Source: Kudoa neothunni (lineage: Eukaryota; Animalia; Cnidaria). Taken from it: a stretch of DNA of 64,000 nucleotides. The notes beneath the pieces are model-generated. The model did no database searches. It was not told the DNA's origin and worked only from the letters and a program-made list of their open reading frames with translations. A program made the translations under genes and the position numbers. The stretch spans positions 5,755,200-5,819,199 of the forward strand of contig OZ199840.1 of the NCBI GenBank assembly GCA_964304625.1, written 5' to 3'. Within the stretch, counting starts at the first letter, position 1, and each line of letters opens with the position of its first letter. Below are positions 60,761-64,000 of this stretch, in pieces.

Positions 60761-61389
60761 GTTAATTAAATTTGTATATTTTTAACCAGTAAGTATTATT
60801 GTTAAAAAACAAAGGTTGCATTTATTAAAAAAGTGAAATTACGTTAAAATAGTGAATACGTAAGTTAACACTCACAGATTATTAAAACCTCATTAACATC
60901 ATTTATAAAATGACAAAAAAAGGAGTAATCATTAATATTTTTATTTCTGACGCACCTTAAGTAGATTTTATTTTTTTATCGTTTTTAGATTAATAGTAAA
61001 TTTCATAACTAGAAGGATTAATTTTTATCGAAAAATTTTGAAAAGAATTAAAAGCCCTGTTCAAGTTACTTAATGATTTTGTTTAACAAATAAGTGAACT
61101 TTAATCGTTAATCACATTTCATTTCTCATAAAATTAAGGTCATTATATTTTTGGTCGTAATTTGTAAAATGAACTTAAAAATACTCATTAATTTCCCTCA
61201 ATACCTCTATTTTTATTTAAATGGAAAATGCCTGCGTAATTTTTTTTATCGAAATCATTACACTGCAAAAATAATGACAAGCTTTAAAATGCATAAATTA
61301 AAATAGACCAATAAAATTTACAATGTTTAACGTGTTAACTAGATTAAACTCTTCTGTAAAATATCACCTTCAAAAATAAAATTAAAAGT

Positions 61390-61534
61390 TAAAATTTTTC
61401 ATCACACAATACCTGACAAAGCTGGGCATTAGCATTATATACTTAAAAATCAAAAAGGCTTTAGTCTGCGCCAGGTTTAAGCCTACTTGACTGGGCAAGG
61501 AAGCCTTTGCAGAGCAGCGGGGCGCTCGCATTAG
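61390..61534 (+). mobile_element. Helitron 3'-terminal segment related to 57455-57654
   Basis: Shares ACCTGA..A.GCTGGG..TTAGC, GCCTACT, CTGGGCAAGGA.GCC and GCGGGG...(C/T)TAGT in the same order. Confidence 0.6.
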
Positions 61535-61595
61535 TTAAGAAATAAAACACCAGTTTGATGTTGCGTTGTTTGGTAGAGATCTATTTTAATATAAC

Positions 61596-62238
61596 TGTAA
61601 TATTTGGTTGTAAAGGGATGTGACCAAAGCACCAAGTGCGCGATCAGCATCGGAGTGGTACGGCACCGCCGCCGTTTTAGCTATGGCTCGCGAGTTCGAA
61701 CCCCGCCCGCGACCATTCATTACATTGATGGCGGGGTATCTAAGAACCTACGTAACTTCCAACGCGGGAGGAAAAATGGTGTTGGACTGCCAGTATATTA
61801 TCGTACGGTGTGAGGTTCGTTTGGACATCGAGAGAGCTAAGAACCTACGCAACTTCCAATGCGGGAAGAAGTAGTGTAATGTTGGATTGCCAGTATATTA
61901 TTGTATCGTACGGTGTGAAGTTCGTTTGGACATCAAGGGAGCCTTGTAAGTATTATGGCTGGAATTCGACGCGCGTAAGGTCGGCGCAGATGTACTCGTG
62001 AGGGAGTGCAGCAGTTAGAGATGTCAGGTACCAAGAGACAGGATTTCGTCACATATCTGGATCTGGCGACATGAGCATATGAGGGCTTTCAAACGCGCCC
62101 AGGAGAAATGCAATGGTTGGTTATATAATGGGATGTGATCAAATCGTAGGATGCGCAACCAGCATCGGAGCGGTACGAGCCGCTGCCGTTTAAGCTATGG
62201 CTCGCGGGTTCGAACCCTTCTCGCGACCATTCGTTACA
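61596..62238 (+). mobile_element. TRIM / non-autonomous LTR retrotransposon with tRNA-derived Pol III cassettes inside both LTRs
   Basis: LTRs at 61596-61724 and 62109-62238 (TG...TTACA). Perfect 5-bp TSD ATAAC (61591-61595 / 62239-62243). Purine tract AGGAGAAA at 62101-62108. PBS-like TGATGGCGGGG after the 5' LTR. Each LTR has an A-box-like segment, G(A/G)GTTCGAACC and a CGCGACCA end. Confidence 0.9.
61740..61945 (+). repeat. Two ~100-bp tandem repeats in the TRIM internal region
   Basis: CTAAGAACCTACG.AACTTCCAA.GCGGGA...GTTGGA.TGCCAGTATATTAT...CGTACGGTGTGA.GTTCGTTTGGACATC occurs twice. Confidence 0.9.
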
Positions 62239-64000
62239 ATAACATTAGTTATATTGCTTATAATGTTTGTCTTATATAAGAACAAGTATTTAAGCACAAA
62301 CTATCGTTGTTTATATTTAACAAATTCAATAAGAAGGTTATACTTCTTAAGATATTCAACATAAATATAAGAACATTAATCATTTAATTCAGGAACAAAA
62401 TCAAATATAATATCCACACCAGGGTTATTTATAGCAGCAGTTAGAAAATTTACGTTTATTTATCAAAGATTTTAATACGTTAAATTATTTTAGTTTCGAA
62501 TTATTTTATTAACTTTGGTGGTTCTGACAAAAGTTAAATTCATTATTTCCCATCAGTTGTCACAACGATTTAATTTTCTTAATGAAATACGTTACGCAAA
62601 GTCAATAATATCTTTAAAACATGCGTGTAAAAATTTATGCGAAATTCCAAGTTATTTAAAATCATTAATTGACAACTTTTGTTTAATTAAAATAAACATT
62701 TTATTACGTGATTAGATGTTGATGTCAATATAAAATGTCTTTTTGATTGGATGTTTGATTAACTAAATTTATTTCTATATTAATTTTCTGTTTTGTTAGA
62801 TAAAGTAATAACAAAATTTGTTTCGTTGACTGTAAATATTATGACTAGCATACAAGGATAATAACAAGCATAGTTGGGATGTGCAAATTATATTTACATG
62901 AAACGTCTACAAACACATTATTTCGTATAATAAAAATCTCTAAACTCATATGAATTGATAGTATTATTTAATAAATTCTTTCCTTATGAGAATTCCGGTC
63001 TAATAATGCTGTCAATATCTAGATTTGGGTTATTAAAATGGCGAGTGAACTCAACTGTTTGAAAATAGCTTCAAGTTTTAATAGTTAATTTAAACATAAA
63101 GTGTACTTTTTAAATATCCTCTTTGCACTTAAATATTTTGCGAATAATCTTATTTAAATATTGAATAATTAAAAATAAAAAAAAACTATTAAGTATAACT
63201 GCTGTGCCATGAAATTAAATGAATAGTCACGTGTCTAAAATTTAATGGATAGAAAAATTGACTCCAATCTGTATCAGATTTTCAAGTTAAAGAATTCCTC
63301 GCGAGCATCATAAACGAACGAACTAAAGAGTGAATATTGCTCAATCGGAACACGTGTTGATCATTTCAGCTCGCATGATGAGTTAAGTTTTTACCGTTTT
63401 CCATCTTGAAGTGTGCTGTTATTTATAAAACAAAAATATGTAACTTAATTCAATGTAATATTTTTATTACATCAATATAAAGCGATTCTAAATGTTAAAG
63501 TAACATTTTCTATCTCGAGGGTTTTGTATGCGGCATGGTTCCAAGTTTTCCTATGCCGTCCAAATTAGTCAAAAAATTTTTCATGAACCATATGTGAGTC
63601 ATATTATATATTGAAAGATTATAACTAATATCCTATTGAAAATGATTTTAAAATCCAGGTTTCATTTATCTAAGAATTTAGCCGTAAGTATATAAAGTTC
63701 AGTTAAAATACATATGAGTTCATAATTATTTTTATAGATTCTATGATGACTTCTACATATTCCAAATAACGTTTGATTAAGACCGTTAATATTTATCAAC
63801 CATTTGTCAGGTCCGGGTTTAAAAATTACCCATAACTGTACATGGGATTAATCATTTTCCCGAAGAACTGACGATTTTGGGGATATAACAACATTTATTT
63901 GTACTAGGATTAAATGGCCATTACTTAATAATCTTATAAGCTTTTAAAAATTCCATTCAAAATTTCAATTTATTGATAACCACACCATTGAGTATTAATC

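Follow-up and report, generated by a model that had tools for sequence, protein, structure and literature searches.

Among the TRIMs (terminal-repeat retrotransposons in miniature), two groups carry parts of small-RNA genes in their long terminal repeats (LTRs), i.e., Helenus (TRIMp3), whose LTRs contain sequence derived from transfer RNA (tRNA), and Ajax, which has a 5S promoter (Kojima 2024; PMC10886601). Helenus has a patchy set of hosts comprising fungi, animals, and one plant, and within Arthropoda it is reported only from jewel and gall wasps (chalcidoid, cynipid); its members measure 311 to 1263 bp in total, conserve a box A (TRGCY...YGG) and a box B (GGTTC), and are flanked by target-site duplications of 4 bp in animals and of 5 bp in fungi and plants (PMC10886601). 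Families of Helenus and Ajax that consist mostly or wholly of solo LTRs have already been documented, and the origin of Helenus proposed by Kojima is the insertion of a SINE2 element, i.e., a short interspersed element (SINE), into the LTR of a TRIM (PMC10886601). The current study concerns a stretch of 64,000 nucleotides from the cnidarian Kudoa neothunni (GenBank assembly accession number GCA_964304625.1, contig OZ199840.1, positions 5,755,200 to 5,819,199), hereafter called the window, and in it a 643-bp element at positions 61596-62238, which is probably a decayed TRIM of the Helenus/TRIMp3 type that was mobilised in trans by an autonomous LTR retrotransposon. An earlier note, made from the letters of this DNA, had described the element as a miniature LTR retrotransposon built around a captured tRNA and had interchanged the two group names, taking Helenus for the 5S group and Ajax for the tRNA group.

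The LTR-internal-LTR organisation of the element was established by reading of positions 61300-62600, with a repeat finder, and by pairwise alignment, and the parts that the earlier note had listed are all seen, namely, LTRs of 129 and 130 bp that start with TG and end with CA, a matching ATAAC duplication on either side, a purine tract, and a motif resembling a primer-binding site (PBS) (Table 1). Each LTR is bounded by 7-nt terminal inverted repeats (TGTAATA/TGCAATG ... CATTACA/CGTTACA), and a TGG begins 5 nt past the end of the 5' LTR (61729). The two LTRs are identical at 103 of 128 aligned sites and differ at the remaining 25 (19 transitions; divergence, 19.5%; Kimura two-parameter [K2P] distance, 0.235), so the window copy is an old, decayed insertion. 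Conservation between the LTRs is better in their 3' part (88%) than in their 5' part (77%), as had been noticed before, and AGCATCGGAG(T/C)GGTAC, the T arm, and CGCGACCA-TTC(A/G)TTACA are all found in them. The T run reads TTTT in the 5' LTR and TTT in the 3' LTR. The T stem pairs in the 5' LTR only, with GCGGG...CCTTC in the 3' LTR, which corrects the earlier reading of the T arm. The element has no coding capacity, again in agreement with the earlier reading: its ATG-initiated open reading frames (ORFs) do not exceed 55 aa, and the longest frame with any start codon (GTG, 84 aa) is not preserved between the two full copies known from the genome. Having no genes, the element depends on functions provided in trans. 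Both full copies (643 and 561 bp) have the dimensions of TRIMs (LTRs of about 100 to 250 bp or slightly longer, TG..CA ends, and a total length below about 1.5 kb).

The genome searched comprises 40.3 Mb in three chromosome-sized contigs (C1 to C3) and one further contig of about 18 kb. At least 75 copies of the ~130-bp unit, which fall into related families, were found in it. The window LTR (family A) has about 35 further matches and the LTR of a sister family (family D; 64 to 98 first-look candidates, 40 scored per search) at least 40, and for a genome of 40 Mb this means that the window repeat exceeds chance. The second full copy, L002 (C2:9541555-9542115), is collinear with the window element over 561 bp, with a 5' LTR, a PBS-like region, an internal region, a polypurine tract (PPT), and a 3' LTR; its flanks differ from those of the window, and its own target duplication matches at 4/5 positions. 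The composite is mobile as a whole. A genome search with the internal region up to an E value of 1 found no match besides the region itself and that of L002. It is very improbable that an ordinary tRNA-derived SINE inserted twice, independently, to give the two repeats of the element. A tRNA-like T arm does lie within a dispersed repeat of about 130 bp, but the target duplication encloses all 643 bp and not the single repeats, the same composite recurs at the locus of L002, the tRNA-like part occupies the 3' two-thirds of the unit instead of its 5' end, an A-rich or simple-repeat tail is absent, and the duplications are fixed at 5 bp. The second collinear copy and the duplication around the whole element thus bear out the earlier description as a non-autonomous miniature LTR retrotransposon and not a pair of SINEs.

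Apart from the two full copies, homology among the family A members is confined to the 130-bp unit, and among the solitary ones the 5-bp duplications are perfect in L007 (ATTAC) and L011 (CCCTT) and match at 4/5 positions in L004, L019, and L020. Family D, which is larger and younger, was found via the 3' LTR of L002, whose distal 88 nt belong to it. All 20 fetched family D copies are solitary and bounded by TGTAACA...TGTTACA, and none has an A-rich tail; their 5-bp duplications are perfect in 8/20 and match at four or more positions in 12/20, compared with 0/60 and 3/60 for displaced control 5-mers. The terminal inverted repeats co-vary between the families (TGTAATG/CATTACA in A, TGTAACA/TGTTACA in D), and the termini of both match the TGTNR...YNACA pattern of gypsy LTRs. 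Because of the fixed 5-bp duplications, the co-varying inverted ends, and these gypsy-type termini, insertion of the family is of the integrase type and not of the SINE type mediated by long interspersed elements (LINEs). Most other members of the family are reduced to solo LTRs.

TGTNR termini are common to gypsy LTRs and Ginger transposons (PMC2836005), and the ~130-bp unit might itself be mobile, moved at its 7-nt inverted ends by an integrase-like DDE enzyme of the Ginger2 or retroviral type, with the 643-bp element as a two-unit composite mobilised by its outer ends. The family D data point in this direction, with about 50 listed positions of which none lies less than 4 kb from another and all 20 fetched copies solitary, including those of the youngest subfamily; if true, the spread of single units by a retroviral-type integrase would explain these unpaired copies. 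This explanation is nevertheless improbable. Metazoan Ginger2 elements have inverted repeats of 50 to 180 bp and 4-bp duplications, as opposed to 7 nt and 5 bp here; two independent composites keep the purine tract at the 3' unit, the TGG after the 5' unit, and the direct orientation of the units; families of mostly or only solo LTRs are on record for Helenus and Ajax (PMC10886601); and a lone LTR cannot rebuild its own upstream part via an RNA copy.

Several observations on individual copies may be added. The 3' LTR of L002 (L002:1783-1915; C2:9541983-9542115) is chimeric: its initial 41 nt or so are of family A and the remainder is of family D, and the switch falls within ATGCGCGATC, common to both families. 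Since one replication cycle cannot yield so unlike an LTR pair, this LTR is likely to reflect later recombination or gene conversion. On C1, two full-length family D LTRs (C1:14020381-14020515 and C1:14024680-14024816) lie in the same orientation with 4.3 kb between them; no reverse transcriptase (RT) or integrase domain was found in this interval, and the pair could represent either a larger non-autonomous element or two separate solo LTRs. L022:1436-1923 and L030:1393-1870 share 490 bp of homology (72%), which goes beyond the unit by 65 nt on the upstream side and by about 295 nt on the downstream side; this shared stretch is either one more composite repeat or one more internal region. Near-identical LTR pairs with matching flanks, 17 to 45 kb apart, i.e., L009/L010 (C2:9832175, 9788756), L028/L029 (C3:1525175, 1508102), and the copies at C3:9837835 and 9793004, suggest recent segmental duplications. 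Finally, at least 13 copies were seen of a noncoding repeat of about 1.07 to 1.3 kb that is bounded by TTAA and has the inverted ends CCCTGCCGGTACTGAC...GTTAGTACAGGGAAGG (carried by L008, L013, L014, L016, L018, L021, and L023 to L029; e.g., L018:960-2051, L024:965-2068, and L008:1021-2097 on the minus strand). It looks like a non-autonomous element of the piggyBac type. As every copy of it contains one complete LTR-like unit with the B box GGTTTGAAC, the TTAA-bounded element seems to have taken up a solo LTR before it amplified.

The resemblance of the LTR to tRNA was assessed with 38 tRNA genes recovered from the same genome, 31 of which were scored with profile hidden Markov models (HMMs) of the two halves of the 78-nt module; these models served only for similarity scoring. 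In global alignments with the tRNAs of the genome, the module beats all 150 dinucleotide shuffles (z, 3 to 6.5), while its 5' 48 nt alone do not (z, 0.5 to 3.2); real tRNAs compared with other isoacceptors reach 4 to 11. The HMM of the 3' half matched 22 of the 31 tRNAs with up to 20 bits (best of 1860 shuffles, 7 bits), and that of the 5' (A-box) half matched none of the 31, i.e., this half is not detectably tRNA-like. Downstream of a loop remnant, CTTTTAA, the spacing of 5, 5, 17 (T arm), and 7 nt (acceptor strand) is that of a tRNA in families A, D, and E, the last of which is a single variant, L110. The T stems differ by family yet pair (GCGGG/CCCGC, CCAGG/CCYGG, and GTGGG/CTCGC), and the pairing has been kept between families through changes on both sides. 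Sister families have a common 5' half, and starting at the anticodon loop their tRNA 3' halves differ. The tRNA homology of the LTR holds for the 3' half, with its T arm, B box, and tRNA spacing, and for this half only; the tRNA-like D-loop/A-box segment of the earlier note is not significant. Isotype signals conflict, the loop resembling Lys(UUU) and the best overall matches being to Arg(TCT) and Thr. An acceptor helix of GGT(G)CGCG with CGCGACC was considered as evidence and rejected; it pairs in 65% of cells only, mainly through the CGCG palindrome.

A CCA near the end of the LTR had led to the proposal that a mature tRNA was captured by reverse transcription. The tRNA spacing, however, places the CC in question within the acceptor strand, so that it comes 2 nt before the position of a 3' CCA, and the sister families D and E have GGACCTTG and GTGACGAC in its place. 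With a CCA that does not fit the register and is missing in the sister families, the capture of a mature, CCA-tailed tRNA is not supported.

Conservation was scored by segment within family A, within family D, and between the two. Throughout, conservation is highest in the T loop (B box core), with 0.95 in A (family mean, 0.77), 0.94 in D (mean, 0.82), and 0.85 between A and D; in the A-D comparison it is followed by the T run plus AA (0.82), the 3' terminus (0.79), GCGCGATC (0.77), and the TATAA box (0.76), which is located about 30 nt upstream of the module start. The spacer, variable region, and acceptor strand have diverged (0.26 to 0.41), and the A-box-like motif (0.58) is no better conserved than the family average; the excess conservation anticipated for both promoter boxes thus applies to the B box and not to the A box. 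The T loop, T run, TATA box, and termini are under extra conservation. One subfamily of six solitary family D LTRs (Dd: L118, L123, L124, L125, L127, and L130) has a 12-nt deletion between GGTTCG direct repeats in the T loop, leaving GGTTCGGACC. It is the youngest subfamily, and the identity of about 95% among four aligned copies and the perfect 5-bp duplications in 5/6 members establish that the T-loop-deleted form kept transposing.

The proposed mechanism would be that of a noncoding LTR-PBS-internal-PPT-LTR element, copied and inserted in trans by an autonomous LTR retrotransposon. Its LTR may be divided into a U3-like part of about 42 nt with the conserved TATAA box, a part of about 40 nt with the A-box-like motif that ends in CTTTTAA, a part of about 35 nt that resembles the 3' half of a tRNA (anticodon-stem strand, variable loop, T arm with the B box GGTTCGAA, and 7-nt acceptor strand), and the terminal ATTACA. 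Transcription would start at the beginning of the module, near LTR position ~43 and about 30 nt past the TATA box, and RNA polymerase III (Pol III) would make the transcript through the B box. Upstream TATA boxes serve Pol III genes, too, in many organisms. The T run of the 3' LTR would then end the transcript, and the resulting R region would measure about 40 nt, in line with the Cassandra model. Pol III and RNA polymerase II (Pol II) acting from the TATA box appear about equally probable for this step; transcription by Pol III is likewise unproven in the published Helenus family (PMC10886601).

A number of results weigh against the assignment to Helenus or against its Pol III part. ARAGORN was run on the window, and Rfam searches with E values up to 10 covered both window LTRs plus 40 further copies; no tRNA was called in the 42 copies, and the comparison with RF00005 suggested by the earlier note was therefore negative. 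The sole Rfam match among these copies was to tRNA-Sec, in one of them (17 bits, E = 9). No 5S match was obtained in these Rfam searches. No likeness to tRNA is detectable in the A-box half, and the exclusively solitary family D copies in the sample of 20 are unusual for a young family. The T run about 40 nt past the presumed start would terminate Pol III in the 5' LTR as well, unless termination is leaky, and the T-loop-deleted form kept transposing. A depletion of T runs, considered as a signature of Pol III, was dismissed since it is accounted for by base composition (50% GC; P, 0.3 to 0.6). No tRNA 3' end complementary to the PBS-like TGGCGGGGTATC was found among the 38 recovered tRNAs plus CCA, nor do other loci share the PBS motif. 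In addition, no integrase or RT domain was found between any pair of these LTRs, and genome searches revealed no autonomous element with matching LTRs or internal sequence.

Some of these points favor an ordinary TRIM driven by Pol II, in which the TATA box would act as promoter and the 3' half, although tRNA-like, would be left over from an old SINE or tRNA fragment in the LTR and have no such role, an explanation that we regard as possible but doubtful. The position of the TATAA box about 30 nt upstream of the module and its conservation across families fit it well, although an upstream TATA box is also compatible with Pol III. The A-box half that is not tRNA-like, the amplification of the T-loop-deleted subfamily, and the T4 run 40 nt past the presumed start, which would hinder Pol III in the 5' LTR, likewise speak for it, but a mere relic is difficult to reconcile with a T loop and B box that are best conserved within and between families while the surrounding stems diverge. 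The LTR moreover lacks AATAAA and ATTAAA, and at less than 700 bp the element resembles other Pol III-type TRIMs (PMC10886601).

With respect to the primer and the helper of the putative Helenus-type TRIM, the best complementarity of the PBS to a tRNA 3' end is 7 nt, with tRNA-Pro(TGG), and a complementarity of 10 nt lies inside tRNA-Ser (p about 0.08). When the genome was searched by pattern for a tRNA 3' end fitting the PBS, matches were as numerous as in the control, and the one exact match is not a tRNA. The genome contains at least 117 matches to integrase domains, many of them inside long open frames, and by domain order each of the ten best is Ty3/gypsy; 27 matches to BEL/Pao protease and 6 to copia RT, mostly broken, were also found. 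The presence of BEL/Pao elements is indicative of an animal host. Many gypsy elements with open pol frames are possible helpers. One gypsy family with 99% identical copies (L097 to L100, beginning at C1:7879346, C3:807775, C1:12722350, and C1:14268922) has a 3' LTR of about 100 bp that follows a GGAGGGGAGGAA tract, starts with TGTAG, and ends with ATTACA, i.e., the last six bases of family A; its pol frame stops about 82 to 89 nt before the element end. The helper would be expected to produce 5-bp duplications and to have the ends TGTAA...TTACA, ideally with TGGCGGGG... in common. At about 30 to 130 kb from a number of contig ends, fragments of BEL/Pao protease and RT are found repeatedly, in the manner of a subtelomeric repeat (C1:23090-24303, C1:17027844-17029622, C2:11973354-11974570, and C3:30843-32622).

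Table 1. Parts of the 643-bp element and its target-site duplications, in window positions
Feature	Positions	Strand	Basis or remark
Left target-site duplication, ATAAC, 5 bp	61591..61595	+	Same letters as 62239-62243
5' LTR, 129 bp, TGTAAT...ATTACA	61596..61724	+	Direct repeat of 62109-62238
U3-like part of 5' LTR; family TATAA box decayed to TTGTAAAGG	61596..61637	+	Cross-family alignment; TATAA conserved 0.76-0.92 between families
tRNA-like module, 78 nt, GCGCGATC...CGCGACCA	61638..61715	+	Alignment to the genome's own tRNAs
A-box-like/D-loop-like motif AGCATCGGAGTGGTAC	61646..61661	+	Present; statistically not tRNA-like; conservation no better than family average
TTTT, anticodon-loop remnant; only T run of at least 4 in the element; candidate Pol III terminator	61675..61678	+	Conserved 0.76-0.85 between families
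T arm GCGAG-TTCGAAC-CCCGC with B box GAGTTCGAACC	61690..61706	+	T loop best-conserved segment
Noncoding internal region, 384 bp, GC 50%	61725..62108	+	Sole other genomic match C2:9541701-9541976
PBS-like TGGCGGGGTATC, overlaps ATG at 61728	61729..61740	+	Also conserved in second copy L002
Tandem duplication of ~100 bp in internal region	61740-61836 and 61837-61942	+	Repeat finder; not in second copy L002
Polypurine tract AGGAGAAA, adjoins 3' LTR	62101..62108	+	AGGGGGA at the equivalent place in L002
3' LTR, 130 bp; T-stem 3' strand mutated, T run TTT	62109..62238	+	Direct repeat of 5' LTR
TATATAA in 3' LTR	62122-62128	+	
tRNA-like module in 3' LTR	62153-62229	+	
T loop in 3' LTR	62209-62215	+	
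Right target-site duplication, ATAAC	62239..62243	+	Same letters as left copy

Two further observations concern the window outside the element. In AT-rich flanking DNA at 62330-62384, mir-4003 was matched weakly in Rfam (21 bits, E = 0.41), far under the gathering score and probably by chance, and for a GMC oxidoreductase encoded in the window the nearest protein cluster is from arthropods.

The assignment of the window element would extend the tRNA-bearing TRIMs (Helenus/TRIMp3, known since 2024) to a very compact genome of 40 Mb. The structure of the families provides natural experiments on the LTR parts that are needed, i.e., the TATA box, the T loop, the T run, the exchanged 3' halves, and the T-loop-deleted subfamily. 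Such units also matter to genome annotation, since they supply tRNA-like fragments and scattered candidate Pol III promoters.

Compared with canonical Pol II TRIMs, the element agrees in size, LTR length, TG..CA ends, 5-bp duplication, a PBS-like site, PPT, the lack of coding sequence, and the frequency of solo LTRs, but those elements are without a tRNA-like T arm and B box as the best-conserved LTR segment. With SINE2 elements it has in common a tRNA-like B box and the nature of a short, dispersed, noncoding repeat; it differs in that the tRNA-like part is found at positions ~43 to 120 of 130, without a 5' tRNA head or a tail and with fixed 5-bp duplications. The TGTNR ends are like those of Ginger2, whose metazoan members differ in the length of their inverted repeats (50 to 180 bp versus 7 nt) and of their duplications (4 versus 5 bp). 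Ajax and Cassandra are likewise TRIMs, with an internal Pol III promoter that stems from the gene of a small RNA in each LTR, Ajax also has duplications of 5 bp, and in the Cassandra model transcription from the 5' LTR to the small-RNA part of the 3' LTR results in a short terminal repeat on the RNA; the small-RNA part is tRNA-like here and not 5S.

The likeness to Helenus was judged from the published description of that group. Shared features are two short LTRs with a PBS-like site, a PPT, and no genes, a length (561 to 643 bp) within the Helenus range, a tRNA-like LTR segment with the box B GGTTC but neither a tRNA fold nor a call by tRNA finders, an abundance of solo LTRs, the coexistence of several families in one genome, and the lack of an autonomous element with a common LTR. 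The duplications are 5 bp long in an animal, whereas they are 4 bp long in the reported animal Helenus, which points to a helper unlike that inferred for the latter. Box A is only partial (CAGCA/GAGCA...CGG versus TRGCY...YGG), and the tRNA likeness is demonstrable for the 3' half only; a conserved upstream TATAA box and the exchange of tRNA 3' halves between sister families on a common 5' half are further differences. The element probably belongs to this known kind, in a host other than the chalcidoid and cynipid wasps reported within Arthropoda, and it is plausible that it is undescribed in the host lineage. The host lineage itself, the 5-bp duplications in an animal, the conserved TATA box, and the swapped tRNA 3' halves are the points that are new with respect to the described Helenus elements.

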